64,000 nucleotides of DNA from Sphaerodactylus townsendi. Its lineage: Eukaryota. A model generated the notes under the pieces. That model did no database searches and had not been told where the DNA came from. It was given only the letters and a program-made list of their open reading frames with translations. The stretch lies in the NCBI RefSeq assembly GCF_021028975.2, contig NC_059428.1:64046001-64110000 (forward strand), given 5' to 3'. Positions within the stretch are counted from its first letter, which is position 1; every line of letters begins with the position of its first letter. The position numbers and the translations under genes were made by a program. This document shows positions 2,181 through 56,710 of the stretch, in pieces.

Positions 2181-2361
2181 CTGGGGATTACTGTGCTTCC
2201 CATATTTCCAAAACTTGTTTTGAGAAAGCAGAGGTTTAAGTTTCTCTTCCAATAAACAATTCTCACTACTAGGCAATAGACAGAGTAGTTTCTTTAAAGC
2301 TAGCAAAGAACAGGTTAAAATTCGAAAGAATTTGGCTTCTCTTTCTTCCTCTGGCACAGTT
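2181..2361 (-). CDS. LTN1: LTN1 exon 6 (181 nt)
   Basis: AG|[24 protein letters not shown]...[12 protein letters not shown]|GTATT. Confidence 0.95.
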
Positions 2362-10882: not shown

Positions 10883-11155
10883 GGCGATGGCAACGGCGAT
10901 GTCGAGATCGAACAGGAAGCGCGCCCGGCCTCTGCCACGGGAAAGAATGACGACGTTTCCGGGGCGGCTGCGAAAGGAATGGTGGCCAAGCCGCCGGAGA
11001 GAAGAGAGCCTCCTCTCCTGTCCAGGCCCTGCTGCTCGGCGCTGCGTGACACGCCGGGAAGAGTCCTCTGCGGGCCGGGAACTGAGAGGCGGTAAACGCC
11101 CTTTTGGGCGTTTTTTCCGGTTCATAAAACTTATCAGAGAATTGCAGTAGCGTTA
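10820..11155 (-). promoter_or_regulatory. LTN1 CpG-island promoter / first exon
   Basis: Sharp rise in CpG and GC content around the LTN1 ATG against a CpG-depleted background. Confidence 0.8.
10841..10882 (-). CDS. LTN1: LTN1 coding exon 1 (42 nt)
   Basis: ATG at 10882, [14 protein letters not shown], donor GTGAG; lies in a CpG island. Confidence 0.95.
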
Positions 11156-12205
11156 GCCAAATATGCCCTTTATCCTCTTTCCCAGGAGGTCAAGGTTGCG
11201 TTCAGTCTTTCAATTCAGCCATTTCTCACCAAATATCATGAATTCGACAAGACAACTCCTGGTCGTGCCTGGAGACCTCCTCTTTTACTTTCTTAGATGG
11301 AAAAACTCTCAGGACCTTAACCCATCCTTTTGGTTAATCAGGTGGCACATCTACTGACTATTTTGTCTTCCCTCTTTTCATGCCAAGAAATAAAATAATA
11401 CAAATCCATACAAACGTGAACTTTTGCCTGCCCAGGACTACACCATCCTGTGAAGGGTGGAGCATCTGTTCCAAACACCTGAAAAATGTTTCTTACATTT
11501 GAATTGGCTACCCAGATAACATTATTGGCTACCTGCCATGCTATTTGGATCTCAGTTTGGACAGGTACTTGAAGACTCTGCTTGCTCCCTCACTTTCTAA
11601 AGTACCATCTTCTCCCTAGTTCTTCAACCCTTTTGATTTGAACACACTGTAGTGTTAAGGCAGGGCTTGATAAATTGGATCCAGGCTTTGGATAGCCATG
11701 ACACCTAGAAGTTTCATTGTGTCACCTAGCAATGATTTCATAATACTGTTTCAGCCATCCTCAGTAGAAATACAAAATGTATTTACCATTTCACATCAGA
11801 ATATGTTTTGCTTAATGACAAAATATGTGTGGTAGCAAGAACTAGAAAACAAATTTATTAAAATATAAAATATTGAAGGTTTAAAAACAAATCTGGCTCC
11901 TGAATTTTGTGCTAGCTCAAAGAATATCTAGGGCCTGTGCTACCTTGTGGAATATTTGGTGTCTTTCATAATGGGCCTTGTAGTGTTGACTACTCTACTG
12001 AACACTTGATATGAATTTAGCTGCTGTTTCACTTTGCTAATTCTCCAGTTCAGCAGGAACAGGAGTATCTTGGCCACCTGAAATTGAGCTTGCCCCTCGC
12101 AAAATAAAAAAGATGCTTGCTATCTGTGGAACTTTTTGCCTGATGAGAACTCTTTAGGCATTTACAGTACAAGCATCATCACAGGCTGCTCTTAGGTAAG
12201 GCAAA

Positions 12206-12689
12206 AGCCCTTTCCGCACAGCAAATGTAAAGCAGGTTGCAGCCGGAATAAATTCATTCGGCGTGTCCCTGAACCACCGTGGCCAGTGAGTGAATTGGCT
12301 GGGGTGCACACCTTTGCATGGAGGTGTGTATTATTTTTATTTACCTTCCACCAATGCGTAGCTACGCAGGCATGTGAATCCCCGCAGCTATGCTGTCTGA
12401 CGTTACAACCCTTTGCACCTGTGTGGCTACACAGATGGGCATTGGGAAAAATTTTTAAAAGGAACGCATGGTCGAAACAAGCACCTCCCTGCCCGGATGT
12501 TTGCTTGGAAGTGGCTGCAACCTGGGATTTTAAAAAATAATTGCAGATAGTGCAATTCTTGAATACCCCATTTTGGGGGAAATAACATGGGGTAGACTCT
12601 CTTTAGGGGTGGGATCTGTGCAAAGTTCCCCCCAAAATAGGTTTTTTAACCATTGCTATCCAGGTTTATTGGTCCGTGCTGAAAGGGCC
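12206..12689. mobile_element. Longer non-autonomous element with GGCCCTTTCCGCAC-type TIRs (related remnant at ~60792-60952)
   Basis: GCCCTTTCCGCACA at the left end, CGTGCTGAAAGGGCC at the right end. Confidence 0.6.
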
Positions 12690-12954
12690 AGACTTGATGA
12701 AATCATCCAAATACAGGTAGCTGTGCATCCTCAATTATCCTTGCTAGCAGAGCATCCAAAAACTGTGGGGAGGAGCCACATCCTGGTTCAGCACTTCTCA
12801 AGGTCCAAACTACACATGACATCTGCTACATTTGCCATAGGACCTACACCATGATGCCAGCTGAGTGCTCCTCTGCGAACTCAATCCAGAAGCACCACAG
12901 GAAGCTGGCCTGGGACCACGACATGGAGAGAACACCTGCCTGCTTCCCCTAGCC

Positions 12955-13469
12955 CAGTGGTAGTGAACCTATGGCACGGGTGCCAGAGGTGGCACTCAGA
13001 GCCCTCTCTGTGGGCACGCACAAATAGAGTCAAACCCCCCCACACACACACACACAAGCCCTGGGCTGTTGGGCTTGATTATCAGCATTAAACCTAAGAC
13101 CTAATTTTGGAGAAGCAGTGTAGGTAACCCTGTTAAGCGCTGTTAAACCCCACTGATTTTCATTCAAAGAAGAAAAGTGTGATCCTTTACCTGGGAGTAA
13201 GCTCGGTTGCTGGCAATGGGGCTTGCTTCTGAGTAAACCCTCCTAGGGTCATGATTCACCCATTGGAAGAGTTGCACGGTTGCTTCAAAGCAAAGCCACT
13301 GACTACTACCAAGCTTACTCCCGAGTAACGCATGTCTCTGAGCCAACCCTTTTTTCTAAACTAAAAGCTCAGTATTCAGGTTAAATTGCCGTGTGGGCAC
13401 TTTGCGATAAATAAATGGGTTTTGGGTTGCAATTTGGGCACTCGGTCTCGAAAAGGTTCGCCATCACTG
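12955..13469. mobile_element. Non-autonomous hAT transposon (hAT1/nhAT1-like termini)
   Basis: TIRs CAGTGGTAGTGAACCT and AGGTTCGCCATCACTG, 8-bp TSD CCCTAGCC. Confidence 0.88.
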
Positions 13470-14494
13470 CCCTAGCCACAGTCCCAATCAGAATCAAAAC
13501 CCTGCAGCACCCCTGAAATGAGCTCTCAAAGGGAACTTGCAGCTGACATCCTTACCACAAGTCCCCATGGCGATCATATAGTAAATGTAATGTGTACTTG
13601 TTAGTATTTTGCATAAAGAAGTTCCAGAATGTGCACAGGGTTTCCTCCATAAACAGATTACTTTAGAAAAAAATCCATGAAGACAGAAAGTTCGAAAAAA
13701 AATCTAGGTTAAAATTAATGTTTGGATTAAATTGATTTTTTGATTGCTGAAATAATTTTACAAGATTAGATTCATCACTTTTTTGTATGGGTTCTGCATG
13801 GCAGAATCTGAAAAGTATACTTTTCAGGGTAATAGATGTGAGATACGGCTTATAGCTATTTCTGACTGTCCCCAAATCACATTGTAAAACAGTTGTTCAA
13901 AGCCTGGAATGGAGAAGCACATAACATTTTAGGAGGTACAGGAAGGAGGGAAATACAAAAAACCTCCTACTGCCCAAATAGCTTCATAGACCATACAGGC
14001 TTACACCTTACTTCCCAGGAGGGGGAGGGGCATCCCCAGGCTTGGAAGCCCAGTGGAAGCCGACAAAGTTAGCTCCATTCCCATTGCACCGGCATGCTCT
14101 CGAACGCTGGAATAACTTTGGAGCGGTGGGCTCTTCCAGGTTTGGATGCCGCGCAGCTGTGCGGCACCTGCCCACCAGTGTCTTTGATTTTTCTGCTGGT
14201 GTAGATGCCCCTTTCACCTGCGGGATGGGAAGACAAGCCAGTACGGGTCCCCTTCACTCCCTGAACATCTTTCACACACCCTGCCTGGACTGTAGGGATC
14301 ATAAACCAAACATAACAATGTTACTCCTCATTAGAAATTATGTACAGACTGGTTGCTTAAATTCTTCTGAAATCTTGCTTCCAGTTTAAAATTCTTAGTA
14401 ATATTTTGTTGGTAAAAATTCAGATCAAAAGAAAAAACAAGGAAGTTTGATCAACTCTAATTTAATGTTCCACTGATTTTTCTCAGCAGCTTGC

Positions 14495-17079
<2,585 letters not shown>

Positions 17080-17149
17080 TTTGTTTATGATTCCTAAACA
17101 AGGTAGAGAAAAAAAATTTAGTATTTGCAACTGCTAACACTATCAACGG

Positions 17150-17740
17150 CTGTATTTGAAGGAGCAGGTTAAATCCCTCAATGATTCCAAAATATTCACA
17201 GTGATACGTTATTATAATGTACTGTATGTAGGGCTGCCTCTGAAGACTTTTCAGAAGTTTAGTCCAGAACACAGCACCAAAGTTATTAATGAGGACATGT
17301 TGTGATGAACACATCATATTTGTTTTATGAGCCGTACATTGGTAACTGATTTGTTTACAAGTGGATTTCAAAGTGCTGGTTTTGGCTTTTAAAATTCTGA
17401 ACAGTCCAAGTTGTGTTAAGAACCACCTTCTTATCTGCACTAGAAGTGCTTCTGTTGGCCATCATCCATCAAACATGAAGCAGGTGGAGATTTAGAAGGC
17501 GTTTTCAGTTGCAGTGAACACCTGTGTGTTGTCCTCCCCTTGCTTGGAATGTTCACCAATGTTTACTAGTGATTTAAGATGTCAAACAAATATCCTTTTA
17601 ATTTTTAAAAAATATATATCTGTTCTTCTAGCTATTTGTTATTTAGTTTATATTCACTGCTATTTTTTTTTTACCATTCTGATAGTTAACTGTTTTGGAC
17701 AATGTTTTAATGTGGAAAATCACAGAATTTCTTTAAAGGG
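17150..17740 (+). mobile_element. Degenerate L2 LINE 3' fragment
   Basis: Remnant peptides LYVGLPLKT and FKVLVLAFKILN, followed by an AT-rich L2-type 3' UTR. Confidence 0.6.
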
Positions 17741-18639
17741 TATCTGCATTCCAATCCTATGCATGTTTATTCAGTAATAAGACCCTCTGTGTTCAGTAAG
17801 ACATACTCCAAGGTAACTTTGCACCCTAAGTTATACATCAAGCCTTCCCTCTGAGAAGAAGGATGGCACAATAACATCAAATATATCTTTGGCATGAAAA
17901 TGAAATACTCCAAAACAAAAAGGCCAAACAAAAATATGCTGTAGAATTGGGAATAAGCCTAACGCAAGCAGAACCTAAATACCCCCCAACCCTCTACCAT
18001 CACTTACCATCACTATTCTCTATAGAGATGTCACTGTCTCAGTAGCTATCGGCCAGTCTCAGATGTGGGATTGCATGTGATTCTCCACAGATATAATATC
18101 AACTATTTAAATAATGTTGCAAGCTTCAGTGTGTTTAGGTAGTCTTGTTCCATTAATAGGCAGATTTAAGTGGTTTTTTTAAAAAAATGGAGATTAGTTA
18201 TGCCCAACTACTGAACTCTTTCAGGGAAAGAATAGGGCAATCGTACATAGTATTTACCCCAATCTAAGGCAGTTATAAGGCTACTGAATTTATTTCTGAG
18301 TACGCAAACTCAGTCCAAATTTCCTTATGCTTACTCAGAAGTAAACCATAAAGTAAACAGTGCTAACTTCCGAAGAGATTTTTAATGAAATGGGAATATT
18401 TTGAATGACTATTGCACCTTTTGGTAGGTTGTATCACTCCAATCACGTTGCACTCATCATCAAAGCTCAGTAGTGTCCTTTCCAGCGGAAGAAAAAACAT
18501 TATTCCTACATTGTTTACAAGTAATTACGCTCATTAAATTCACTGAAACCTATGAGTACGTCACAGGATTTTGCTCGAGTAAAAGTCGGCTCCCAAGGAA
18601 GCAAGTTAAAGCTACCTTCAACAGACAGCTAAACTTCGC

Positions 18640-39058: not shown

Positions 39059-39908
39059 TATAGCATAAATTCTGGTCCTCACAGATGTGCAAGTTGAAAA
39101 CTTACAATTCAGACTGTGTAAAATTATCCTAAGTTCAATATTTGTTTGCAGAGTTTACAGTAGTTTTGACACAGCCAGCTTTGCACATTTTTTAAAGTGG
39201 TCAGCTCCAAGAAGCTGTGAGTCATGGGGAGGGGTTAGCATTTTTAAAATATACAGGCCTAGAAGGGACTAGGATGTAACCTTGTAATTTTATTACGTAC
39301 CTACTGTTGTCCTTAGGTTTAGCTGTTTCATAAGTAAAATGGACAAGCGTATGGAGCTTTTTTTGGAACGTAAATGGACAAGGAAAGCAGATATCACTCC
39401 CACAATAGTTAATCTTTTTAAACTATGAAGGGAAAGAAGATATCTATGCTTTTCAAAAACACTTTGGGGGATAAAAATGCAAACTTTTCAGCTTAAAATT
39501 AAGCTATGGCTGGTGGAAGGAACAGATTTCTTTCAGAGTTGTTGGAGCAAAGACTAAATTTACTTACTAGGATAGATTGAACCATACTCCAATATCTTCA
39601 GACTAGAACCAAAAGGTTTACAATGTAAAACATTTCAATTAATAAACTTTGTTACAGTTTAACAGTAGAAGTGACATACCTCTCCCTCTATATATAGTCC
39701 ATTTGAAATAACTGGCTTATTACAAAGAAACAATCCATATGTATACAACTGTTTTATAATATTTTATTACAATTCGAAAGTTAACATTAGAACAGGTGGA
39801 AACATTTAATTGAAGTTGCGGTATAGGACAAGCATCTAATAGAGATTAATCTCATAATTTAGGTGATCAACACTAATACACAATCTGCTCAGAAACTGCA
39901 GTAGCACT

Positions 39909-39986
39909 TCAGTCATTTTGGTCATCATCCAAATCTTTCTTCCCTGATGGAGGCTTCGGACCACCAGCTGGCTTTGCCATGATGAT
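39909..39986 (-). CDS. CCT8: CCT8 canonical (distal) terminal exon 15b
   Basis: TTTTTTCTTCTAG|IIMAKPAGGPKPPSGKKDLDDDQND*; AATAAA on the minus strand at 39763-39768. Confidence 0.95.
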   Translation of the reverse strand: MIMAKPAGGPKPPSGKKDLDDDQND

Positions 39987-42900
39987 CTAGAAGAAAAAAG
40001 GAATTATTAGACTTCTTCCTTTCCTTATGCAACAAAAGATCTGAATGAAAAGACCTGAGAGAATTGTTTTTATCCATTATTATTCAATAATAATATCCAT
40101 CCACATGCTAAATTCCTTTAATCCATAATTTATTCAACTGGGAAGAATCTTATAGGTTTTGGTTTTGACAAAAGATTTAGATATTTGCAGTATCATAAAA
40201 ATTGCCACTTAATATTGTTTCTTTAAAACCAAACAACACAAATACTATGTGCCCATCCTATGTTACTGATACCTCCTCATAGTTCTTTGAGTTTGCAATT
40301 TGAATTACACAAACGCTAAGCCAACAGTATTTAGGCCACAATTTCATATACAATAGTATCAAGTTGCTTAATCTGGTCTGATTTCGTACCTCACATACAG
40401 TATATGTTTATGATCCCTGAACACTGAAAGGTAAATTTTGCCACTCACAATGGCATATTTGTCAGCAGAATTTTTAAAGAAGTTTCCCCAAAGTATGGTC
40501 AGATATTCCAGAACAGTTCTTAAGATATATTATCAACAGGTGGTGGTGGTGGTAGAAAGTGTGTTCAAGCCACAGCAGACTTGTGGCAATCTTGTAGGGT
40601 TTTCAAAGCGCATGATGTCCAGAGGTGATTTGCTATTGCCTGTCTGTACTTCAGGAACCTGGACTTTGTTGGTGGTTCATCAAAATACCAACCAGAGCCA
40701 ATCTGTTTAGCTTCTGAGATTGAACAAGATCAGGTTTGTCCAAAACATTTAAAACTATACTGCACAAAATACTAAACTGGCAAATAATTGTAGAAAATAG
40801 CAGGTTAAACCCAAACACAGTATCCTCTGGTGCCAACGCCAGGCTGGTCAATCGGGTTAGCAGAGCAGTGGTTCTCAACCTTCCTAATGCTGTGACCCTT
40901 TAATACAGTTCCTCATGTTGTGTTGACCCCCAACCCTAACATTTATCCATTTTACAGATGGAGCACACTGATGTAGAGTCTTAGGCGACCCCTGTGAAAG
41001 GATCGTTCGACGCCCAAAGGGGTCGCAACCCACAGGTTGAGAACCACTGAGTTAGAGGATGGTCATAGCATAGATCAGTAACTGGTTGCTGCGGTTCACA
41101 ATATTGTATTGGCATTTGAATTAGGAAAAATTTAATCTGTTCGTAAATGTTCTGGAATCACGAGTCAGCAGTGAAGTGGCCAAGTTTGTGAATAACAAAT
41201 TATTCATAATGCTAAGAAATTAAGTGAATCATGGACGTTGGTTTCCAGGTTCTCAGAAAATCCTGTTTTAGAAGCATCTAACAGCACAACAAGATGCTGC
41301 ATCTTTAGTATTTTAAGCAGGCTGTTAGAAGGTGACATTGCCTTGCACACACATGCTTCTATAAGACCTGGGCAGAAAATTCAGGCATAAAGTACTCATG
41401 CAGACATGGGTCATTAACATGGAACTTCAAACCAACTCTTACTCCATACTACTGTTCATGATCATCTTTCCAGTCATCCTTGTCCCAATGTCCTGTTGAT
41501 TTAGGGGCTTTTGGACCACCCGCTGCTTTTGCCATAATAATCTACAGAAATTTCACAAATATTTCCAGTTTCATTAAGTCACTGTACACCAACACAATGA
41601 ACACCTATTCTAATGTGTATGCAAGGGGACAGATCCTAACCTCCTTTTCTTCTAGTGGAATGACACTTCCGTTAGGGATGGGGAAGATCATTTTCACCAA
41701 TTTCTAACTCCCACTGCAGATTCCCACACTGTTCCCTGTGCTCTTTCCAAATGTCCCCCAATGAGGGGGGTGCAGTTGGGAGAGTTCCATTCTGCAGACA
41801 GTCCACTATATTCACTTTTTCTGCAGTAAAGAACTTACAATGTAAAATTGTCTAAGTTCAAGATTTGTTTACAGAGTTCACAGCTTTGCACATTTTTTAA
41901 AGTGCTGTCAAGCCACAACTGAGTCATGAGGAATTAGCATTTTAGAAATATACTGGGTTAAAAGAAGTAATTATGTATCTTCCTTATCATTTTATTACAT
42001 AGCTACCATTGCCTTTAGGTTTCGCTGTTTCATAAGTAAAATGGAAAAGCATGTGGAGGTATTTTGGGAACTTAAATGGACAAAGACAGCAGGCATTCCC
42101 TTGCCACAAAATCAGTCTGTTTACAGTACTTTGGATCTATCTCATTATCCTTGAACATATTGACCTGTAGCCCCTAACAGAAAACTCTAAATGCTCAAAT
42201 GACAATAAAGTAGCGCTAAGCAGCACAACATCCCAGAGTAGCTGAATTCTGGGAAATATACATTCCTGCAATAAAAGACTATCAACAATATATTAACGAC
42301 TACAAAACCTGAAACACTGAAAACATATTGTGCCAACTCACCTGATCAACTCTCAAGACGGTGACTGCAGCATTTGTAGCCAGCTTGATACCCCAATGTT
42401 TGCCAAGGTATGTGTCTAACACACCAGCTCCTACCATGTCTTTCACAGCTGCAGCTTCAGCCTGTCAAAAGTACACAGAAAATATTATTAATATCTGAAG
42501 ACTATCATAGCTCCACCTTCCCATCTTGTTGCCATGACTGTTCTTTCTCAGCTTTGTGGCTCCATTTCCTACCCCTCTTTGGTCTGGGACTAAGCCCATC
42601 TGTTCTTCCAGGACAGAATTTATATCACGGAGTATAAAGGTTAGAACTTTGACCATGAAGAGATCGAAACTATGGCACAAAATAGCAAGTCCAGAGGGAT
42701 GGCTTTTTATAAGTCATTTCTTTCCATGGATATTCTGAAATGCCTCAAACCCACCCAACAGAAGTACAATACCCTGTTGTCAGCTCTGTCCTAACTGAAA
42801 AGACGTCCAAATGTTACCACAGCAGACAATTCCTGACACATAATGTAACTCTTAACTTCTCCTTTCAAAAGCATTGTATCTGAAAACTTCCCAAACACAC

Positions 42901-45900
42901 CTCCCCTACAACCTCAAGCCCCTTCCCTCCTCTTCAGCTAATTCAGAAGCTTGCTTTAGGCATCTCTACCTCCCTCCAACCCCAGGAAAACCAGAATTTT
43001 CACTATTCTCAACCCTGATACCAAGAGCTGCCTCTTCACATCTTGGAACTCCTGCTCTGCTCAACTTCAGCTATGTATCATGGATCCTGACTCATTTGTC
43101 ATTCCCTACTCCATTTCAGATTTTCTTGGATGACTACATGAACTGCTCATGAACTGTGTAGATTTCCACTCAGCAAGTGACCCCTCCTGGAACTCTGGCA
43201 TTCAAGGTGGTGTAGATATGAGGTCAGCTTGGATAAGGTACCTGCACATTTATAGACTGCTCAAGAAGACAGCTCATTTCTGAAAAAAAGTATAGTTTCT
43301 TCCCTCCATCCCCCTTGCTAGTTTTCTCTCTCCCTCCCCAACACACTAGTCTTTGACATTCACAATGCATGGTATGAATAAATATTATGAAAGAGTTAGG
43401 ACTGGCTAAGATACTTGTGGGCTTCTAACAGGCCATCCCTGAAGGAGGGCAGAGTAAATGGGCATCAACCAGGCACAGTACAACCCCACTGCCTCCAAGA
43501 GAGCTGCATAGGTGTGGGGAACAAGAAAACAGTTAAGTCCCCCAATCGGCTGCACCATCCTTTCTGCTAGTGTAAATCTAGACCAGCAAAAGGGGGTGGT
43601 CCTGGGCTGAAAGGGCACAGGAAGCTAACGAAAGCCTCCAGAAATGTCCCCATCAGTGCTGGCTGCTACACTGCAGTGTTGGCACCCAAGTGTTGCATGG
43701 CCTCCCAGCTCCCCAGAGCCAGCCTAAGTTTCCCTGGGCTGGCAAGAATGTCACTTATGCCAGTGCAGGGGTCATGCTGCATCCAGAGCTCTCCCCGCCC
43801 CGCCCCCCCCCCCCCACTCTTATGATTGTACTATTAGTATATTTGTACCGCAATATACTGGAAAATTACTTCAACTAACATGTATTTAGTTTGCAAATAG
43901 TAATAATCTGTACATCAAGCCATTCTAATTCTGATGAAGGCAACAAAGGATATACATGGAACCTTCCCTCAGTTTCCTAAACTCATTGCTCATCTAAATA
44001 TGACATTTCCATGTAAGTTTATTAAATACACATGTTTGGAATATGGCAGTTCTTATAATTTTTTGTATGAATATGCTATATCCTAAATTACATAGCACAT
44101 TCAAGGTGCCAGAACTAAACGCATTACTAGTAATAAGGACATTCAGACATTCTAGCAACTGAATATTAAGCCAGATATGCATGAACCCAGTTCAGTTCAT
44201 ACACACATCCTTCCATGCACGGAAAATCCCAACTGAAGACTAATATAAAAAGCATAAATTCCAATGAACCTGCACTCATATGGCATTGGTAACCAGAAGT
44301 TTCTTACCAGAATGTTCATTTTATCTACACAACTCTTCTACCATACAAGGTATTCAGTGGTCAGCTTTGTTTAAACAATGTTCAAGGCAGTTTACAGATT
44401 AACGACTGCATTACAAAATTAAGACACACCTCATCTGCATGAAATAAATACTATTTTAAAGTCATAAAACATACATACGGGCTCCAGTGGGTCTAGAAAG
44501 GAAAGTCGCCATCCTGGTTTTAAGTTTCGCTGAACTGTTGTATTATTTTACTGGTTTTAAATAATTTACATATTGAACATTTTTATTGTAACTTTGTATG
44601 TTTTGATTGTACGCCGGTCTGAGCCCTTTCGGGAATGGGCGGTCTAAAAGTCCAATAATAAATAGATAAATAAATAAAACAACGTCAAGATGAGCTTGAT
44701 TCTTGGAAAGGGGAGTCTACCATGTAAAGTTATGATGAACTTCCCCATTGCTCCTCTCTGGGGAGGGTATTTCACAAGCTTATCTAGCAAAGCATGTTCT
44801 GTTGGCTACTGTAGATGATTAACTTCTTACCTCGATATCAAACCCAACATTTTTGTTGCCTTCTTGATGTACTGCATAGAGTTTGGAAATAAGTTCATTA
44901 GCCTTGACTCCAGAGTTTTCTGCGAGAGCACGGGGTATGGCTTCAAATGCCTCAGCAAATTTCTTGATAGCATACTGATCAAGACCTGGACAAGTCTAAA
45001 AGCAAAAGCAGTTGTTCAAAAAACCCAAGCAGCATAATAGAAATATATGTTCAATAAGTCCGTTTGCAGCTTACCTCTCCATATGAAGTGATCTGCTTAG
45101 CCAACTCAATCTCAGTTGCACCACCACCTGGAACAAGGCGCTTATCCTGCAAAAAAGTGAAAGTAATTGCAAAACTACTCGAAAGACAGAGATTTTTGTC
45201 ACTGAGTATTAAAAACTTCAGAGTTTAGGTTTCTCAGCATTTTGGCAACTGCATATACTTGCATTCACTTCTTACTCACCCGAGTGAGTACTTTGAATGT
45301 ATTGACACCATCATCAACTGCTCGTTCCACATCATCCATGAGATTGTCTGTAGAACCACGAACAAGTATAGTAGAAATGGCACCATCTTCGTTTTCTGTT
45401 AAGAAATTGACTTTTAGGAAACCTAAATGTAAAACCTGAATATATATTATATTCAAAACATAAAATGTAGCACAGAGCTAGGTAAACTCTAGTACATCTG
45501 CTGAGCAGCATGCCACACTATTTGCTCACAACAAAGGGCTAGTTTTCTGCCCAAACAACCAATGTGACTGACTCACTGAGATGTGGCAGTGCCAGTTAGA
45601 ATGGTGGCGTAGGAAAGGGTGATGGACATGGTTTGTGCATGGAACTGTCTCCCAAACCTGTGCAGCCACCAGATGAATCTACAGCAAGTCCAAGCCACTT
45701 GCAAAAGCATGAAGCTCAGCCTGCTTTTGGTGTATCTAGCCAAGTACAACCCTCATCTTTTCTCAACTCCCTACACATTCTCATCTTTGTCAGCACAAGC
45801 AGCCTACTCACTGAGGGACACTGCAGTGCAGGGCATATTGAGCGCAAAAGGCTAGTTACACCTAAGCAATTAAAAACACAAAGAAACATACCATGTTTAA

Positions 45901-48900
45901 ACACAACTACGTGCGTTTCTCCAACTTCTGATAAATAAACACTATCACAGTGACCCATTTCTTCTTGATTAGGTGGTGTCTGTAAACGAAAACAATAAAA
46001 CTTAAGTTTACGCCAAGGTAGCCACCTACAATGCATGCCTTCTTGTTGTTTACATACCAATCTGGGGAGGGCTGTAGCACCAACTGTTTTACATAGTCTT
46101 CTGAGATCCCATTTAGAATTCAGCCTTTAAAAAAAAAAGGATAATTTTCAGGAAAAACACCACAGTTATTGGAAAAAAGTTATTTCTACACTGAAATAAA
46201 ATTTCTGTGATTGTCTACTACCAGCGCAGTGGCAAATAATTTATAAATATCACAAGACCCTGGGTGCAACTCTGTCAGCAAAAGAGAGCTGTGGCTCAGT
46301 AGAGGAGCATCTAATGGTCAAATAGGGTTCAAATCCCAGCACTTCCCATTTAAAAGAATCTGGCAGTAGGTGATTGGAGAGACTTCTGCATAAGCCCCTG
46401 GAGAGGTCCCACCAGCTGAGTAGGGTCTGATTAAGTATAAAGCAGCTTCAGATGTTCATGTGTTAAAGTCGTCAGCTGTAATCTGATCTATATTTTTTAG
46501 TTCTTAATGTATTTTATTAGCATTTATTTTGTTATAATGTATACTGTTTTGCCATGTTGTTAGCCGCCCTGAGCCCTATAGGGTATAAATTGAAATACAA
46601 AAAAAAGTGACTATTTTTTCCCTTGTTTGATGAAGCCCAGTGCAGACAACTTATCTGCACATGCTTTACCAGTTGAGGAAGACTAATGATTCAAGTACAT
46701 TGGCCCTATATCTGTATACTGAATCATCTGCATGGTACAAACACTTGAAAGAAGTGCCCTCATGCATACTCCTTCTCTGTTACCAGCATTTTTTTCCAAT
46801 TTTCACACTGTGAAGTTGACTTGATGATTGTGCAGAGGCACAGCCAGTCTACTTATGGCCACTCCCCTTCCCTTGGCAATGAGGAAACAAGCAGATGGGT
46901 CATCTACAAAGTACTATAGCAATAAGGTATTCTAGAAAGTAATGCTGCAATACAGCATCTTCAGCAATCCTCTCCACCACAGGAGTAGGCTGACCTTTGT
47001 CTTACATAGTTAGCAAGTTCCAAGATCCACTAGATTTCTTGCAGCAAAGCCATGAACGAAACTATTCACTAACTCGACAATTTAAAAAAAATGCTTTGCT
47101 GGATCTGATCAAAATCTAGCCAGCCCAGCATTCCTTGAAAAAAATTCAACAGACAGCAAATATTAGATGAATCCCAGATGAACTGGAGTTTACTTTCTAT
47201 CTATCCATTTTTTAAAAATGGAACTTTGGTAATGGATCATAAGCAATTTATAATGTTTTTGTATCTGACTTTCAAAGGTATTCTTTCCAAGGTAGTTGAA
47301 ATTTGTAAGTCTTACCTGACTACCATGAGATTGTATTTGTTAGCATAATGAAGGGCCATATCTGCAATTTTTCCACCAGATACCACAACATTTGCACCAG
47401 CATCAGCAATAGCTTTGACCTGCAGCTCCATCAAGTTCTCTTCTCCTTTGCTGAAATTCATTAATTCTTCAGCATTCTTGATCAGTACTGTTCCCTGCAT
47501 AAAATAAAATTTGAGGTTGAAGATTTTCTAAAATGGAAACATTTCCAGTGGTTTATGTTTCTGAATTTTACAAATTCATTGTTTGTTAGGAAAATGAATA
47601 GATGCAAAATTGTCAGTCTTAAAATTGTAATTAATATTTTTCAGGTAAATTAATATCTTTCAGGTAAACTGTCTCTAGGAATTGTGTGAGAGTACATAAA
47701 TGTTTTATAAATCTGTAAACCAGACATGGGAGGGAATATGGCACCAAAAATACATATACTGAAAAAAATCTAGTTATGGATTCTCCTGATGGACTATACA
47801 AGTACAATGGTAACTAAAAGCTAAAATGTATATTCACAGTTGTCTCCACAGGGGGGATATTGTTACTGCCAATCTGATGTGAGACAAGTAATGGAAGCGA
47901 TGCTATGCAACTGAGGTACTTAGTGATTTCACGGAAGAGTTATTCTGTTGAAACAGATGAGCAGAAAACAGCATCCCTGGCATAATATGCATAGTAGTTT
48001 AGATGTGCTACAATCAGTGTCAACTGTTCTGGATGTTTCTGCTGTTGGAATAGCATTTAAATGAGTTAGCATAAAAGCTCAATGATATTTGGAAACCGTG
48101 AAATCTACATGCTCTGGACATCGGTAAGGGTATGGCACCCCCAAATATGAAGGTGAGCAAACTCTATGAACCCTTGTTCTAATACTGAACTCCTCTAGGG
48201 CAGATAAAACACTTTATAATCTTTTTTCTAATAAAAGACATATTTGGGCTTAAGTTTAGACCATGTAAAGAACAATACATTTTACAAGTATTGTTCCAGC
48301 AAAAAGTTTCCACATAAACCTCTTAACATTTCAATGTAAGCACTTGATTTCCCTCACTCCATATTTCAGTTCAAGTAACTGTTGCTACTGAAACAAAACA
48401 GAGTGCCTTTAAACATATAAGTCAAAATAAACATGTTAAATCTGATCACAGTTTATATTTAGGGCAGGGGTCTCCAACCTATGGCTGTCTGGATGTTCAT
48501 GGACTAAAATTCCCATCAGCTCTTGCCAGCATGGCCAATTGGCAGAGCTTATAGGAATCATAGTCCATGAACATCTGGAGGGCCATAGATTGGACACCCC
48601 TGATTTAGGGTATCACATTTTCCAATTATATTTTTTCCTCAAAACTCTCATCATTAAGTAAAGCATTGTTTTTCTTCACATTCACAGAAACAGCATGTTG
48701 GAGATCTATTCCAGATTTTTTAAAAAAATTATGCTTCAACATGGCATAATTTCTATCTTTCTTCAGCACAAATCTTTTTACAAATAATGCAGGTACTTGA
48801 CCAAGCAAAGCAAAAGTCACTAAAAAGTCAGTGTGACCAGGTCTACAATTTAGTGAATGAGGTACTATGCGTCTGTGCGAATGGCCTGGGGCAATGAGGG

Positions 48901-51900
48901 GTTCATTTATCCTGCCTGCAACCCACTTTACAGTTGCTGTGTGGAAAGGACCATAGTTATAGTTATCCTATCTTTTTTAAAAAAAACATACTGCTGACTA
49001 CATAGACCCCCATTCTGATCCAGTAGGGCTTTTCTTACAGAAATTATACAGAATTAAATAGTTCTACCAAATCAAATAGCCATACAGAAACAAAGATCAA
49101 TATTCCTACCAAATGCAGCATAACTTATATAATAAGCCTAAAAACAGTAGATGGGATACTTTTTTCCTGATTTACTAATTCTTCATTTAGACTCACACGG
49201 CATGTACAAATACTTGGGGTAATGGAATCTCTCTCGTTTTATACATGGACTCATGGCAGCACTTCTTGCATATATAACTGTAGAAATGGCTGTGGTACGT
49301 GACTAGGTATTACCCAATTTACAATATGGTAGCCCGCTAGGACCAAGCAAAATGCATAAAGAAAGCTCACAGTCTGACTTATGCTGAAGTTTGCCAATGC
49401 AACTCCATACATAAGAGGAATCATTTTGGGAGATAAGATAATGAGCAGAACATAAATTAACAAGTCCTTAATTAGAATTAGTAATAAGCATTTATGGAAA
49501 ACTCCAAAAACATACCTTGGTCTCTGTTATCATACCATCAAAAGGACAAGAATATACAGCTATTTTAGCATCTTTGACGGAGGTAATATCACCTTCAGTT
49601 TCTTTTTTAAAAACCATGCCATGCAATACTGTCGAGGCACAAATGCCAGAACCCTGAAGAAAATACAAATGACAATCACTGTTCAGATTTTTTCCCAAAA
49701 ATAGTTTTAAAATTTTATAACTTGAAGTGTTTACGTTGTATTCTCACAACTCCAATATCTAAAAGGATTGTATCCCAGACACCTGAAAGATCCACAAAAC
49801 ATGCTCCTACAGAACGCACAGTATTGAGATGAAAATATACTTACTAAGATCTTGCATACTCGGATGTTATCGACATTGAAATGGCCCGATTCAGGAAAAA
49901 TAGACACTGTGAAAATTAAACAAAACATTTTTAAATGAAACTGCTAGGTAAACTAAAATACTTTAGGGTTAGTTAGATTGGACTTAAAGAATATGGGATT
50001 GGTGACAATAGATCAGTTCATGTAAATCAAAACCAGTTTGGTTTTGGTTCATGTAAATCAAAACCATGAGCTATGATTTAGTTACTTCCATTTCAGCACA
50101 AACCATAGTTTGCACCCAGATTCAGAAAGACAACCTACGCTTTGATTTGCCCTGGAAATTATTGGATGGGACGCAATGATCAGCAGAAGACACTGACGGT
50201 CATGAATCCTCCCAGCAAATCCTTCCCTGTTCCACAGAAGTTTGTTCCCAGGGTCACAGAACCCGAATGGACAGAGAAGGGAAATATCTGATCCTTTTCT
50301 CTTTCTCAAGACAGCTTCATGACCTGCAGTCTCACAATCCAAAATAAACTTCCTGAGATCAGAATGGACTACTTGAAGGGGCTGGAGAGAGGTGCAAACA
50401 GGAAAAGTCCAAGAACCTTGAGAAATTCGGTTTGACAGTAACACACAAATGCCAAATTAGCAATCTGGATGTGGAACGGAAGTAACTGGCTGCAAGCATA
50501 GAAGCTGGGCACAGAAACACAGAGCTTTTTACACTCAATGCCAACTTATGGTTTGGTGCCAAGGGAAACCACACTAAACAATCATTGCTGCAAAAGGACT
50601 CCAAATGCTCAGTGAAACTACAATCCCTTATTTTTAAATAGGAGCTCTCAGGTCTGCTGATGTCAACCTCTGCCAGAAGTGCAGCTGGTCAAAGGGGATA
50701 GGGCTGCAGAAAGCTGCTTTAGAGCCATCTGGTTAAGAGCCTATGCTGGGCCCAGTTGGCCAGGGTTTTCCTGTTCCTTCATCCAGGCACAAATGATGTT
50801 CCAGGTCAACACTGAGAATTAGCCTTTAGCTGAAGGATATTATGAGGGATCTATCCCACAACACCAGGAGTGATATCATCTAAATGCTCAAATCAGCATT
50901 TAGATAAAACATAACATAAAAAGCATTTAGATAAAACATAAAAACTCAAAAGTTTCCAAAAAATCCAGAAAGTTACTTTAACTGTGTTTCTCAATATAAA
51001 AGTCAACACTTGATCCCATTAACATGAATATAAAAGATCAAAGATGTCACAGGTACAAACTTTATATTACATTTAGGTAAAATCACGATTACTTACCACA
51101 TGCCTGTGCAATAAGCTTAGACAGAAACATTTCACTGCCACACTGCTTACTCATGACTGAAGTATGCAGCAAAGCTGCCACTTCTTCAGTGTCCCGAAGA
51201 TTTTTTGCAGAACAGCATACTAGATCGGGAAGAATCTCTAGAGCTTTTTTACTGGCTTTTTCATAGCCTTCAATGACCTAAACAAAATGTAACCACATGT
51301 GTTAGCAGTCCAGCTAAAACATAAGTTTGGATTATTTTAGGAACCACTCTGGCTGTGCAAAGAATCTTTTACATGTAATTACAGTGGAACACAGTAAAAG
51401 TCCATTACTGTTCTTCAAAGATGGCAAATATCGTTTGACATACGTTTCATATCAATGTCAGTGATGTCAGGTCACAACTGACTTTGGTGACCCCAGCAAA
51501 AGGGGCAATTCCCATTGCCTTATTCTACGGTTTGGGTGGAGCTTTCAAGATCTGATGAGATAAAGCTATATCACGCCACCTTTTCATAACTAGGGGACAT
51601 TAGAATACTTTTTAAATCAATTTTTCTCCAAGCAGCTTACAACAGAAACATAAGAAACATGTCTTCAAATGAACAAGGTTCCTAGAGAACCTAAAATAGA
51701 CACTAATGCTGTAAGACTCTTTCCAAGTTCTATGTTGTTCCTATTGCTGTTCATTTGGAAGCTGAAGTTCAAGAAATTGTGCTGCCAAGCATCAAATGTA
51801 TTTTTAAGAATTTGATGACAGAGATAATCTGAGTTCTATAAAAGTCATCAAAGTTACAAGGTTTTAGAAAATTATTCTGATTTACAATAATCTGTTGGAA

Positions 51901-54900
51901 GGAATTACCTCTGAGACAGAAAGTCCCATTCTTAGGAGTTCTTCTGCAAGTTCCAAGAGAGCTCCAGCAAAAACAAGCACAAAATTTGTTCCATCACCAA
52001 CTTCTTGCTCTTGCATGTGTAAAGCCATGACAATCATTTTTGCAGCAGGGTGCTGAACCTATTTAAAATTCGATGTGAGAATTATTGAGCATATCCTTAA
52101 ATACCTGGTGAACACTAGCATGCTTCACCATGCTATAAAAGCAACAGTACAATCCTATGTGGACTCTCTCCAAGCTAAACCCACTGATATCCATGCGTTT
52201 AGACTGAGTAATGCTAAACAGGATTGCACAGTAAGAGAGATCTCTTATCCCCATTATATACTAGATTAGCCATAAGCTGCAACCCGGGCGGTATAAGCCT
52301 CTAAGGCACTGAATTTTACTGACCGTCAAAACCTGGGAAAACTTCTATTGACTACAAGTGTGAAGCGGGAAGGGGAAGCTGGGGTTTGAGGAAGCCCAGC
52401 CAGCCAGCAGGCAGAGGGAGCTCCTTATTTGGGAAGTGACATCAGGGGGAGACACTGCCCAAATAAGGAGCTCCCTCTGCCTCCCAGTTGGCTACACTAG
52501 GATCTTTTTATATTTCTATATGCAGAATTTCTCTAGCAAATATTGATGTAGTATCAGCAGCAATAATCTATTTCAGCATGAAATAAACTTCTTGTAGCCT
52601 GAATGAACAAGCAATGGTTGAAACTACTCCCCACTTCCACCTTTTTTTGAAAATTAATTCAACACAGTAGGTGTGGTTGTTAGAGTGACAGGCTAGGACA
52701 GGGGTAGGGAACCTGCGGCTCTCCAGATGTTCAGGAACTACAATTCCCATCAGCCCCTACCAGCATGGCCAATTGGCCATGCTGACAGAAGCTGATGGGA
52801 ATTGTAGTTCCTGAACATCTGGAGAGCCGCAGGTTCCCTACCCCTGGGCTAGGACCTGGCAGATCACAGTTCAAATTGACACTGCTGAAGAAGCTTGCTC
52901 GGTGACCTTGGAACAGTCATACACTCAGATGAACCTATCTCACAGGGTTGTTAGGAAGATAAAACAAAGGAGAGAATAATATAAGCTGCTATTAAACCAA
53001 CTCGAGAGAATTGCAGGGCATACATGAAATAAATAAGGTACACATAACTGCCTTTTGTTCAAATCTCTTCCCACACCATACTATCTCATCTTTCTCTCTT
53101 CTTCCCTCCTCCAATCTATCTCTGACTCAGACAGCCTCATAGAGAAAACTTTAGTGAAGAAATCCTGCCTTGAAAAATAATATATTAACAAAATAGCATG
53201 AAGAATTCTGATGTTTAATGTGGCTTTTAAAAAGTAGATTCTAGGTAAAAGTTGCAAAAAAATAACTTACCTCTAACTCTCTTAAAATAGTTGCAGCATC
53301 ATTGGTAACAAACAGCTTTTCCAAATGATTGATAACCATTTTGTTCATTCCTAAAGAAAATCAAAACACTTCAAGTACAGTTTCAGTCCTCACTGTAAGC
53401 TATATTCACCACAGTATTAATCATAAATAGAAAATACATGATATTTGCCTTTGTAACATATGAAAAAGTTTCAAAAAAAATAATTGTTAGGATTTTAGAA
53501 GTGCCTGCTTCATTCAGTCAAGCAAGAGTTAACTGCTGAAGTCACATGACTGGAATCAAATGAGCTTCCGAAAGATCTCTCTGTTTCTTCCTCCAGCAAA
53601 AGAGGAGAGACAGACACACAAGCACAGGTAGGCTGCACAGACACCTATACTGAGCACTTGAATAGACAGAGTTTGCTGTTCCTATATTTACTGTAAGTTC
53701 ATTTATTATCTAGTAAAGTTCTACAACTCACTTGCATCTCTGCCTTCTTATTTACTCTAATAATTCATTGTACTACAGCAAGAATTAATCTGTTACAAAA
53801 TATTATGCCTTTATAATTGTCCTTTTAGGTCTGAATAAAGCCTTATATCTATCTCTATTAAAATTAAAGACATCTTACCATTTGGTCCATAAGCTGTACG
53901 AGTAGTTTGAGCAAGTTCTTTGCATGCCTGAATGTTTCGAAACACTGCCTCCTCCAATCCCGCATAATGCTACAAATACAAAACATGTGAACATGTGAAT
54001 TCTTGAAAAGTTAAAATACATGACTTTAGACAAATCATGAACGCAAACTAAATATTTTAAAACTATCAAAACAGTTGAGCAACCCAGATTGTTGTTACAT
54101 TAATTTACATTTGTTTTCATTTGAGCATCTGTGTGTAAATCAGAGATGTCTTAACTTGAAACTGCTTTCCTCAAAGTATCACTTCAAAATTTTATTTCCA
54201 CTAAATTTTCTGTTACAGGAAGGGGATCTTCAACATTAGTACGGTGATTAAACCCAGCTCCTTCTGTTGATGGACAACCAGATGGACACCATCCCAGATA
54301 CACTGGCTGTGTGCACAAGGGCTGTGGTGGGGCAGCTCCAGTCGAGTCAGCTGAAATTGAATCCATCTAAGATAGAGATACTGTGGCTGGGCCGAACTGG
54401 ACTGGATCTTGAGATAGTTCGATTGGCACTATGTGCCTCTGCCAAAAGCCTGGGAGTGATCTTGGATGCCTCCCTTTCTTTGGAGGCACAGGTCATTAGT
54501 ATTGCCAGACTGGCTCCTTCCATCTTTGCGAAGTCCAGCAATGTATGTCCTACTTTTACAATGTATGTCCTACTTTTCCAATCTAGCTACCGTGATCCAT
54601 GCAATGGACAGCTTCAGAAAAAGACTACTGTAACTTATTCTATGCAAGGCCATTTTTGAAACTGTTCCAGAAGCTACAATTGGTCCAGGATGCAATAGCA
54701 CAGGTCCTCAAAGGATCCTCCTGGAGGGCATATATTCAGCCTGTGCTCCAGCAGCTGACAGGCTTCAGATTGATTTCTGGATTAAGTTCTTACCTTCGAT
54801 GTCCTAAACAATCTAGGACCTTTGTACTTGTGGGACTACTCCCCCCGCAAAAAAGAGATTTGCACTCTTTGTCTGACAATCTCCTGGTTATCCCTGACCC

Positions 54901-56710
54901 AAAGACCATTCAGCTGTTCTCAACTAGGGCTGCAGCATTCTCAGCCATGACACCTGCCTGGTAGAACTCCCTACCTGAGACCTCAGCCCTTAAGGATCTT
55001 TCCAGTTCCAGAAGGCTTGTAAGACAAAGATGCTCCACCACCCCCTTTTTTTCTGTCAGTATAGTTGAGTGCAACTATAGTTTACATCTATTTACTGGCC
55101 TAGATTCTTGTATTTTCAATTGCTGCACTCCCTCCTGCTTACCCCTTCACTCCAGCTCTCCTCCCTCTCCCTTTCCTTCCTGAAATGAATCTCATGTTGT
55201 TGATTCACATTTGCTAACTTCTATCCAATTTTACTCAAAATATAAACCCTAGTTAATTGCATGGTAAATTGCATTTCAGTCTTCCTGAATCTTGTCTTAT
55301 AAATGAACAATTAGACTGATTTCCAACACTTTAACAAACCCATTTGTATGTAAGAATGAATTCAATATGTTGCTACATGCTAACATACTCCCTCCCTACA
55401 TGCAGAGTACCACTGAAAATGTCCTAATTTCAGTAAACTCCAATTGGCTGCAAACTCCAAATGCTGGAAAACTCAAGAGTTTGTTTCCTCCTAGGAACCA
55501 GAACTGGGTGATGTTCTAAGTTATACAACTTTCCTCTTTTGTTCTCACATTACCATACATCTAGTTTTAATATCATTCAAAGAGCGCTTTAAAAAAATTA
55601 CATTGATATTACAATAAATGGTTTTAGAAACACCACTATAAAGTTACGGACTCCACCTAAAACCTTCAGAGCATGAAACTGACAGAATGGGACTATCCTC
55701 TTTCTCACTGCAGTCCACAGAGATTCTGCTCCTAGGAATCAGTATATTTTCAAGAATATTTAAGGTCCGGAGTCAACAGGAAAGAATCAACAGAAATTGC
55801 CATCCTCTCCTCCCATAAACACCATTTCACTACCAAAAGAACACTTTTAGATTCAACTGATCATTAAAGATAACATTTAAAGAGAAATACTTCAATGGAA
55901 TCCAAATTTTCTATGACATGTGACAATATGGATTCATTGGAAATCTGTTTAAAATATATGTATGCTTCTTTTACTCAATCTGAGTATCTGTTTTCGTGTA
56001 CCACTTCAATGGATGACAAGAGAGAAAAAGCGGGAACCATGGTACCACACAGTAAAAAAAACAACCCAGATATGTTCAAGACGGAGAAGAGGGCTTCTTA
56101 GATGATAATGAGGATTTCAAAAAGCTGAGCAAGTATTACAGAAGGCATGGAGCTCTGCAAAATACAGAACCTTCAACACCACGGGTACTGTCTGCTTCCA
56201 ATCACCAATACCATGTTGTGTTAAACCCCAAACATGCACAAAGGTCCCCATGCTTAAGAAAACAAACTGTATCAAACTGATTTTTGAAAAAAAATAGAGC
56301 AAAAATATTCAGAGTCGGTTCTTGCTATTAACGCCCTTCTCGTACGCATCAGCCAATGGCGGGGAAGGGGATTGTCCATCCAGCCGGTTCCACCCTACAG
56401 TGAACACGTTACCGAGCGAAATGAAGCTTAAGGCACCTCCTGACACCCCGCGGAGGTCGGAGGGAGAACTCACCCCGCCGCCGCCATGCTCGAAGAAAGA
56501 AAAACGCCAGTTCGGCCGTGCGCGTGCCAAACAAGCGCGTTTCCATGGGAGACACGGGCCTTTGAAGCCCTACATGGCGCATGGCACCGGCTGCACGGAA
56601 CTGCCTTCGCGGCTGGAACCTTCCGCGCCCCGCGCCCGTCCCTTGCTCACCTTCGCTCCTTCCTTCAGCATTTGAGCAAAGCCCGGAGCCTTCGGAACGT
56701 GCAACGCCAT
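39909..56710 (-). CDS. CCT8: T-complex protein 1 subunit theta (TRiC/CCT chaperonin), 548 aa with the canonical last exon
   Basis: 15 GT-AG exons total 1647 nt in frame. Starts MALHVPKAPGFAQMLKEG and contains GPNG, TNDAATIL, GDGTN and VPGGGA chaperonin motifs. Confidence 0.97.
40866..41049. mobile_element. SPIN (Space Invader)/URR1-type hAT MITE
   Basis: CAGTGGTTCTCAACCTTCCTAATGCTGTGACCCTTTAATACAGTTCCTCATGTTG...GGGTCGCAACCCACAGGTTGAGAACCACTG matches my recollection of SPIN non-autonomous ends; TSD degraded. Confidence 0.85.
41449..41541 (-). CDS. CCT8: CCT8 alternative (proximal) terminal exon 15a, giving a 553-aa isoform
   Basis: TTTCTGTAG acceptor, phase 0 (matching exon 14), IIMAKAAGGPKAPKSTGHWDKDDWKDDHEQ*; paralogous to the canonical last exon. 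Confidence 0.75.
   Translation of the reverse strand: MIMAKAAGGPKAPKSTGHWDKDDWKDDHEQ
42342..42461 (-). CDS. CCT8: CCT8 exon 14
   Basis: AEAAAVKDMVGAGVLDTYLGKHWGIKLATNAAVTVLRVDQ|GTGAG. Confidence 0.95.
44831..44995 (-). CDS. CCT8: CCT8 exon 13
   Basis: TCPGLDQYAIKKFAEAFEAIPRALAENSG...NVGFDIE|GTAAG. Confidence 0.95.
45075..45146 (-). CDS. CCT8: CCT8 exon 12
   Basis: DKRLVPGGGATEIELAKQITSYGE|GTAAG. Confidence 0.95.
45280..45395 (-). CDS. CCT8: CCT8 exon 11
   Basis: NEDGAISTILVRGSTDNLMDDVERAVDDGVNTFKVLTR|GTGAG. Confidence 0.95.
45892..45979 (-). CDS. CCT8: CCT8 exon 10
   Basis: TPPNQEEMGHCDSVYLSEVGETHVVVFKH|GTATG. Confidence 0.95.
46058..46124 (-). CDS. CCT8: CCT8 exon 9
   Basis: LNSKWDLRRLCKTVGATALPRL|GTATG. 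Confidence 0.95.
47316..47494 (-). CDS. CCT8: CCT8 exon 8
   Basis: GTVLIKNAEELMNFSKGEE...ALHYANKYNLMVV(R)|GTAAG. Confidence 0.95.
48465..48602. mobile_element. Older related palindromic hAT MITE
   Basis: CAGGGG...CCCCTG ends, shared TTCCCATCAGC...GGCCAATTGG core, 8-bp TSD ATTTAGGG. Confidence 0.85.
49516..49653 (-). CDS. CCT8: CCT8 exon 7
   Basis: GSGICASTVLHGMVFKKETEG...PFDGMITETK|GTATG. Confidence 0.95.
49845..49906 (-). CDS. CCT8: CCT8 exon 6
   Basis: SIFPESGHFNVDNIRVCKIL|GTAAG. Confidence 0.95.
51097..51277 (-). CDS. CCT8: CCT8 exon 5
   Basis: VIEGYEKASKKALEIL...MSKQCGSEMFLSKLIAQAC|GTAAG. Confidence 0.95.
51909..52058 (-). CDS. CCT8: CCT8 exon 4
   Basis: VQHPAAKMIVMALHMQEQEVGDGTNFV...GLSVSE|GTAAT. 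Confidence 0.95.
52668..53036 (+). mobile_element. Older MIR/Squam3-like SINE split by the 52699-52846 MITE
   Basis: Head GTGTGGTTGTTAGAGTG before the MITE; GGTGACCTTGG core and AAATAAATAA tail after it. Confidence 0.65.
52699..52846. mobile_element. 148-bp palindromic hAT-type MITE (same family as 4927-5074), nested in a SINE
   Basis: Same TIRs, 8-bp TSD GGCTAGGA; differs from the reverse complement of 4927-5074 at about 2 positions. Confidence 0.93.
53271..53350 (-). CDS. CCT8: CCT8 exon 3
   Basis: MNKMVINHLEKLFVTNDAATILRELE|GTAAG. Confidence 0.95.
53879..53969 (-). CDS. CCT8: CCT8 exon 2
   Basis: HYAGLEEAVFRNIQACKELAQTTRTAYGPN(G)|GTAAG. Confidence 0.95.
54257..55035 (+). mobile_element. 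Degenerate L2 LINE (3' part of RT) in CCT8 intron 1
   Basis: Broken ORFs LKLNPSKIEILWLG, SLGVILDASLSLEAQV and KLQLVQDAIAQVL, typical of L2/CR1-group ORF2. Confidence 0.8.

Follow-up and report, generated by a model that had tools for sequence, protein, structure and literature searches.

A cassette paralogue of the last coding exon in CCT8

We analyzed a window of 64,000 nucleotides (nt) from the gecko Sphaerodactylus townsendi (contig NC_059428.1, positions 64,046,001–64,110,000; all positions below are those of the window), which carries on its minus strand CCT8, the gene for the theta subunit of the chaperonin TRiC, and in the last intron of this gene an additional 99-nt exon, here called the cassette, whose open frame would give theta a second C-terminal tail. 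The annotated product is a protein of 553 residues with a Cpn60_TCP1 domain (PF00118), and exon 14, which precedes the cassette, corresponds to residues 484–523 of solved CCT8 chains in the PDB (E about 1e-15). With a Cpn60_TCP1 fold and a C-terminal equatorial segment specific to theta, the gene is identified as CCT8.

Exon 14 ends in ...RVDQ/gtgagt, and its donor is offered two splice choices. Skipping of the cassette joins exon 14 to 39986 and gives the protein end ...RVDQ-IIMAKPAGGPKPPSGKKDLDDDQND, the peptide of the canonical last exon, whereas the upstream choice adds the cassette, whose TAG ends translation, and gives ...RVDQ-IIMAKAAGGPKAPKSTGHWDKDDWKDDHEQ, a protein of 553 residues. 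The cassette frame (41541–41449) is preceded by tttctgtAG, follows exon 14 in phase 0 and reads IIMAKAAGGPKAPKSTGHWDKDDWKDDHEQ up to its stop. A preliminary description of this DNA had reported such a second, intact paralogous exon with an AG acceptor, phase 0 and an open frame, and the sequence confirms it; what that description missed is a GTAAGAG donor directly after the exon (GT at 41442–41441), with the TAG placed 6 nt ahead of the donor junction. The two acceptors differ, the cassette having tttgtgaaatttctgtag, with a weak polypyrimidine tract, and the canonical exon ccttttttcttctag.

The first 11 codons of the two paralogous exons show 7 nucleotide differences, namely six at synonymous third positions and one Pro/Ala change (chance of at least six of seven falling on third positions, 0.007), in agreement with the earlier remark that the first 11 residues are alike while their codons differ silently. 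Only two copies are present: a six-frame motif scan of the 64-kb window found no third copy of the last coding exon.

Use of the cassette in RNA samples

We examined RNA data on 39500–45050, comprising raw RNA sequencing reads of samples X5, X6 and X7 and contigs of an RNA-like run, X4, with reads placed under a 95% likeness filter. Samples X5–X7 carry the species label of the window and show fixed differences of 1–3% from the assembly (for example at 39872, 39882, 39960 and at intron positions); the RNA was probably taken from another population of the sequenced gecko or from a sister species of it. The exon 13/exon 14 junction (44830/42460, GT..AG) is present in all RNA runs, and the junctions that follow exon 14 are listed with the other features in Table 1.

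Table 1. Features of the CCT8 locus and splice junctions of its 3' part, in window coordinates
Feature	Position	Strand	Details
CCT8 gene (public annotation)	56710..39909	minus	high end presumably the start codon; low end is the canonical stop
CCT8 exon 13, third-last constitutive coding exon	44831..44997	minus	reads leave the stretch at 44997
CCT8 exon 14 (AEAAAVKDMVGAGVLDTYLGKHWGIKLATNAAVTVLRVDQ)	42342..42461	minus	donor common to both splice choices
Alternative cassette exon, 99 nt	41443..41541	minus	coding 41541-41452 (30 residues); in-frame TAG 41451-41449
Cassette donor GT (GGA/GTAAGAG)	41441..41442	minus	skipped segment 39987-41442, which ends CT..AC on the plus strand
UGCAUG (RBFOX-type hexamer)	41397..41402	minus	41 nt downstream of the donor; sole TGCATG within 41143-41841
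Canonical last exon	39796..39986	minus	coding 39986-39909, stop 39911-39909, then a short 3' untranslated region
Second ATTAAA, in the last intron	41131..41136	minus	present; without support as poly(A) signal
Canonical junction	42342 to 39986		X5 58 reads, X6 34, X7 0, X4 one contig of depth 2607; GT..AG
Alternative junction	42342 to 41541		X5 0 reads, X6 6, X7 23 (15 distinct starts), X4 none; GT..AG
Cassette exit junction	41443 to 39986		X5 0 reads, X6 3, X7 2, X4 none; GT..AG

The cassette is included in 0 of 58 junction reads in X5 (0%, 95% confidence interval 0–6%), in 6 of 40 in X6 (15%, 6–30%) and in all 23 in X7 (100%, 85–100%), and the difference between X5 and X7 is significant as judged by a Fisher test (p = 1e-20). 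Use of the exon in mRNA, which had been proposed from the DNA, is thereby observed with sharp differences between samples: inclusion of the cassette is regulated, ranging from none to all of the junction reads.

Where the inclusion transcripts end bears on the nature of the exon. The preliminary description had taken it for an alternative last exon that continues into a 3' untranslated region (3'UTR) of its own, with polyadenylation behind the ATTAAA at 41136–41131, so that the two isoforms would have different 3'UTRs. This hexamer does exist where it had been placed, and few X7 reads exit by the 41443 donor, leaving room for another 3' fate. However, reads spliced from 41443 to 39986 occur in two samples, read depth over 41174–41359 is zero in X7 and only at intron level in X5 and X6, and no molecule ends near 41110 were reported in the RNA samples. 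The reads from 41443 to 39986 make the exon an internal cassette, so that the canonical 3' end is common to the two isoforms; there, an ATTAAA (39810–39805) is followed by molecule and read ends at about 39796–39804. Given the zero depth in X7, the intronic ATTAAA is not supported as a poly(A) signal. In addition, the GTAAG donor is kept in most sauropsid sequences compared (see below), and a fish-like complementary DNA (cDNA) has a canonical-type exon behind the alternative-type exon. We therefore consider it very improbable that the exon is a last exon with a separate 3'UTR.

Conservation and age of the cassette

The 30 cassette residues were compared by phmmer with 1.84 billion representative proteins, and the contigs of the matching open reading frames (ORFs) were then compared with one another. 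The matches are 17 short ORFs of 70–86% identity. These ORFs show Q at the position of the TAG, and a missing stop in other species was considered and rejected, as the DNA reads TAG and the code used by the caller translates TAG as Q.

The comparison covered six sauropsid sequences, namely the window, L001, L004, the bird-like L008 and L011, and L010, which stems from a Japalura splendida swab run (PMC12336156). In each of them the acceptor is kept and 30 codons are followed by TAG as codon 31 and a further 6 nt, and five of the six have the GTAAG donor. Across this set, identity to the window is 83–92% in the exon versus 18–59% in the flanks, and the ratio of nonsynonymous to synonymous differences per site (pN/pS) in the exon lies between 0.06 and 0.41 in all 15 pairs. 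These values indicate that the cassette exon is under purifying selection at the protein level, as the preliminary description had suggested.

Both exons occur, in unchanged order, in contigs of eight species (lizards, birds and fish-like). In the fish-like contigs L005, L013 and L015 the exon order is the same, and the alternative-type exon encodes 35 residues ending in ...F[ED]TH[HY] and a stop. L016, a fish-like cDNA from a JGI metatranscriptome, consists of exon 14, an alternative-type exon ending in ...FETHH and a stop, 38 nt, a canonical-type exon and a 3'UTR with AATAAA; the layout with a stop-containing cassette is thereby documented both in fish-like cDNA and in the reads of the gecko relative. 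The exon duplication is older than the split between ray-finned fishes and tetrapods. The idea that the alternative-type exon is the ancestral copy was withdrawn, given that yeast and crinoid tails resemble both types and that fish-like genomes carry both exons.

This record is difficult to reconcile with a decaying duplicate or splicing noise, that is, with a relic that is included by accident and has no selected protein product. From fish-like species to geckos, the frame, the position of the stop and the splice sites have been preserved, and mammalian gene models retain the tail; pN/pS stays below 0.5 for every pair, with the introns saturated; every one of the 23 junction reads in X7 includes the exon; and frequent frame disruption across species is not seen. 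Although the exon shows 0% inclusion in two samples (reads of X5, contigs of X4) and was not found in the literature searched, both of which a relic would explain, we regard this possibility as extremely improbable.

A different concern is raised by a 27-nt stretch of the exon, TGGGAYAAGGATGACTGGAAAGATG, which is nearly invariant, synonymous sites included. This invariance points to constraint at the RNA level, for example by a purine-rich splicing enhancer, and the canonical coding exon becomes 3'UTR upon inclusion, both of which would suit a regulatory role in which inclusion mainly alters the fate of the mRNA (a longer 3'UTR, translation, stability) and the tail itself is irrelevant. Amino-acid conservation, however, extends past this stretch, the Trp-containing motif is kept from teleosts to mammals despite different codons, and the stop always lies less than 50 nt from the junction, which fits a stable coding mRNA rather than decay. 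A purely non-protein role appears quite unlikely to us, although the purine-rich stretch itself, judged by its conservation, probably acts as an exonic enhancer.

We consider it highly probable that 41541–41443 is a pan-vertebrate, stop-containing CCT8 cassette, a tandem paralogue of the terminal coding exon, that gives theta an alternative tail. Several observations weigh against this proposal: (i) the tissue labels of the RNA samples are coded, and usage is compared between samples, not between named tissues; (ii) the lizard sequence L010 has ATAAG in place of the GTAAG donor; and (iii) in X7 the cassette exit junction has 2 reads against 23 entry reads, and the depth of the last exon relative to exon 14 is about three times below that of X5 and X6. 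About 10 reads of X7 must cross the acceptor at 39986 yet fit no listed junction. Owing to this shortfall, the fate of most inclusion transcripts in X7 is not directly shown.

The 95% likeness filter is a likely cause of the shortfall. Because the samples diverge by 1–3% and the exon is variable towards its 3' end, its last 25 nt being the part that varies most between species, exit-junction reads may drop below the cut-off. In keeping with this explanation, the longest shorter side among the exit-junction reads measures 44 nt and stops just before a single-nucleotide polymorphism at 41488. The RNA samples keep ancestral states at 41521 and 41488, where the window is derived, and all three exon differences between these samples and the window (41521, 41515 and 41488) are synonymous third positions.

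As to the agamid donor, L010 reads GGA/ATAAGG at 433–445, and a GT 6 nt further on (AAG/GTTTGG) could substitute for it without touching the coding sequence. Either the donor is shifted in that agamid or the cassette is used differently there.

Fate of the inclusion mRNA and candidate control

With the cassette TAG lying 6 nt before the junction, the canonical coding exon serves as 3'UTR when the cassette is included. The distance from the stop to the last exon junction is 6 nt in sauropsids and 38 nt in the fish-like cDNA, and since both values are below 50–55 nt, the inclusion mRNA would, by the 50–55-nt rule, escape nonsense-mediated decay (NMD) and provide a stable message for the alternative-tail protein. 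The exon thus has the acceptor, the used donor and the stop distance of a stop-containing cassette that is expected to evade NMD. An NMD-inducing poison exon, in which the stop would lie more than 50–55 nt from the last junction, was rejected on the same distances.

A candidate control element lies downstream. Each of the six sauropsid sequences, lizards and birds alike, has a TGCATG 42–50 nt after the stop, equivalent to 36–44 nt past the donor, and the chance of one hit in a slot of nine positions is about 0.004 per sequence; in the window a second GCAUG downstream of the cassette starts at 41356. RBFOX-regulated exons characteristically have a conserved (U)GCAUG in the first 100 nt or so downstream of the exon, which makes the cassette a candidate for regulation of this kind. 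An RBFOX-type activator may bind the UGCAUG at 41402–41397, and such an activator, acting on the conserved motif about 40 nt downstream of the donor, is the likeliest driver of inclusion, with about an even chance of being so. RBFOX control would predict inclusion in muscle, heart or brain.

Like known RBFOX-activated cassette exons, the CCT8 cassette combines a UGCAUG about 40 nt downstream, held in position in lizards and birds, with a weak polypyrimidine acceptor and switch-like inclusion; the likeness is drawn from the motif and from the switch between samples with coded tissue labels.

Additional hexamers are seen in the bird-like sequences. An extra UGCAUG lies 19 nt upstream of the cassette acceptor in L008 (603–627) and L011 (2018–2042), and both have a doubled UGCAUGCAUG downstream of the cassette. 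The candidate regulatory hexamers vary by lineage.

A predicted alternative tail for TRiC theta

The cassette tail has 30 residues versus 25 in the canonical tail. Replacement of ...PPSGKKDLDDDQND by ...APKSTGHWDKDDWKDDHEQ leaves the net charge unchanged and adds two Trp and two His. The cassette motif IIMAK-x-AGGP[KR]-x-PK-xx-[GED][HN]WDKDDW is common to birds, amphibians, fishes and mammals, in the last of which the alternative tail reads IIMAKLAGGPKAPKPQGNWDKDDWQDE.HI, and both Trp are present in every sequence examined except the horse model.

The canonical tail of the window has Leu (codon TTG, 39939–39941, minus strand) for the Trp of KKDWD, as does L004 (KKDLDDD), and the Japalura contig L010 has Met at this position (KKEMDGD); the Trp is present in the bird-like and mammalian tails and in most fish tails examined. 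The squamate-type canonical tails examined have lost their Trp, while the alternative tail keeps two.

TRiC rings assembled on the inclusion isoform would carry a theta tail bearing the conserved G[HN]WDKDDW motif. In published structures (PMC10188570) the C-termini of TRiC make up a hydrophilic net at the floor of the chamber, where they are in contact with tubulin, and the alternative tail would accordingly be expected among the disordered C-termini that line the floor and touch substrates. Because the C-termini line the floor and contact tubulin, replacement of the tail could change substrate handling. We tentatively suggest, as a possibility that we hold to be somewhat less than even, that vertebrates build tissue-specific TRiC, in which some tissues (perhaps muscle, heart or neurons, under RBFOX control) would make essentially all of their CCT8 with the G[HN]WDKDDW tail in place of one of the KKDWDDDQND type and so alter how particular substrates, such as actin or tubulin isoforms, are handled on the chamber floor.

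TRiC is usually regarded as one fixed hetero-oligomer across tissues. A conserved splice switch from 0 to about 100% in the chamber-facing tail of theta would mean that tissue-specific TRiC variants exist, and if this is true, the switch is more than 400 million years old and stands in automatic gene models, with no study of it found in the literature searched.

A known route to tissue-specific TRiC composition is the use of a paralogous subunit gene, as in CCT6A/CCT6B. The two cases are alike as routes to tissue-specific TRiC variants; CCT6A/CCT6B, however, swaps a whole paralogous gene, whereas CCT8 would change only the disordered C-terminal tail of theta, and by splicing.

Public annotation and related exon systems

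The tail of a peafowl TrEMBL isoform (P0028) was used as query against 5.8 billion proteins. The proteins with this tail are named T-complex protein 1 subunit theta isoform X1, have 553 residues (558 in teleosts) and come from birds, a turtle, lizards, snakes, geckos, frogs, a caecilian, a lungfish, the coelacanth, many teleosts and many mammals; besides this gecko, the exon is present in public gene models of more than 100 vertebrates. The isoform X1 of S. townsendi itself ends in 30 residues identical to the cassette peptide of the window. At the DNA level, the annotated locus L017 (GCA_021028975.2, CM037617.2:64084909-64103710) corresponds to window 57710–38909 with 100% identity over 18,802 nt, and the gene called at 1001–17802 of this locus corresponds to 56710–39909. 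Since the locus is identical, the public annotation already contains the 553-residue product, whose length agrees with that predicted in the preliminary description; the surmise made there that a predicted isoform might already exist was likewise correct.

As a feature of the genome the exon is therefore no discovery: it stands in the public annotation for this assembly and for many vertebrates, is already known from gene models and belongs to the exon family of the annotated CCT8 isoform X1. The isoform X1 entries of NCBI (S. townsendi, Euleptes europaea, Pogona vitticeps, Manacus candei, Xenopus tropicalis, Carassius auratus, Lutra lutra) represent the same exon, with a sequence that is no different; these entries were predicted automatically and give neither tissue data nor an architecture or a function, points that are in part supplied here. 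A literature search found no paper describing or studying the alternative-tail CCT8 isoform. Our analysis adds the cassette architecture, the switch from 0 to 100% inclusion between samples and the conserved UGCAUG.

In terms of exon architecture, CCT8 resembles tandem exon duplication systems, in that two adjacent paralogous exons encode one segment, made up of the IIMAK strand and the tail, and a given mRNA is translated through only one of the two. Unlike mutually exclusive exons, both CCT8 exons can share a single mRNA, and the stop of the upstream copy decides which tail is made.

Other sequence features of the locus

A direct repeat is present in two copies, 41841–42092 and 39117–39390, which are 73% identical over 280 nt, with blocks of 84–100%. 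The copy at 41841–42092 falls within the last intron, upstream of the cassette, and the copy at 39117–39390 is situated beyond the canonical poly(A) site, where it belongs to a longer transcribed tail (X4 contig 39500–39988, which continues past the stretch, depth 344); no further copies occur elsewhere within the 64-kb window. We considered whether this repeat marks the exon duplication and rejected the idea on two grounds: its geometry, with a spacing of 2.7 kb, is unlike that of a tandem unit, and a non-coding identity of 73% is far too young for an event more than 400 million years old.

Finally, an element resembling a miniature inverted-repeat transposable element (MITE) lies at 40866–41049 and has perfect 16-nt terminal inverted repeats (CAGTGGTTCTCAACCT / AGGTTGAGAACCACTG). 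RNA reads reach a depth of about 100–170 at this MITE-like element, with many loose ends and joints that go back. The element is a high-copy dispersed repeat that is transcribed from many loci, and this transcription is unrelated to the expression of CCT8.

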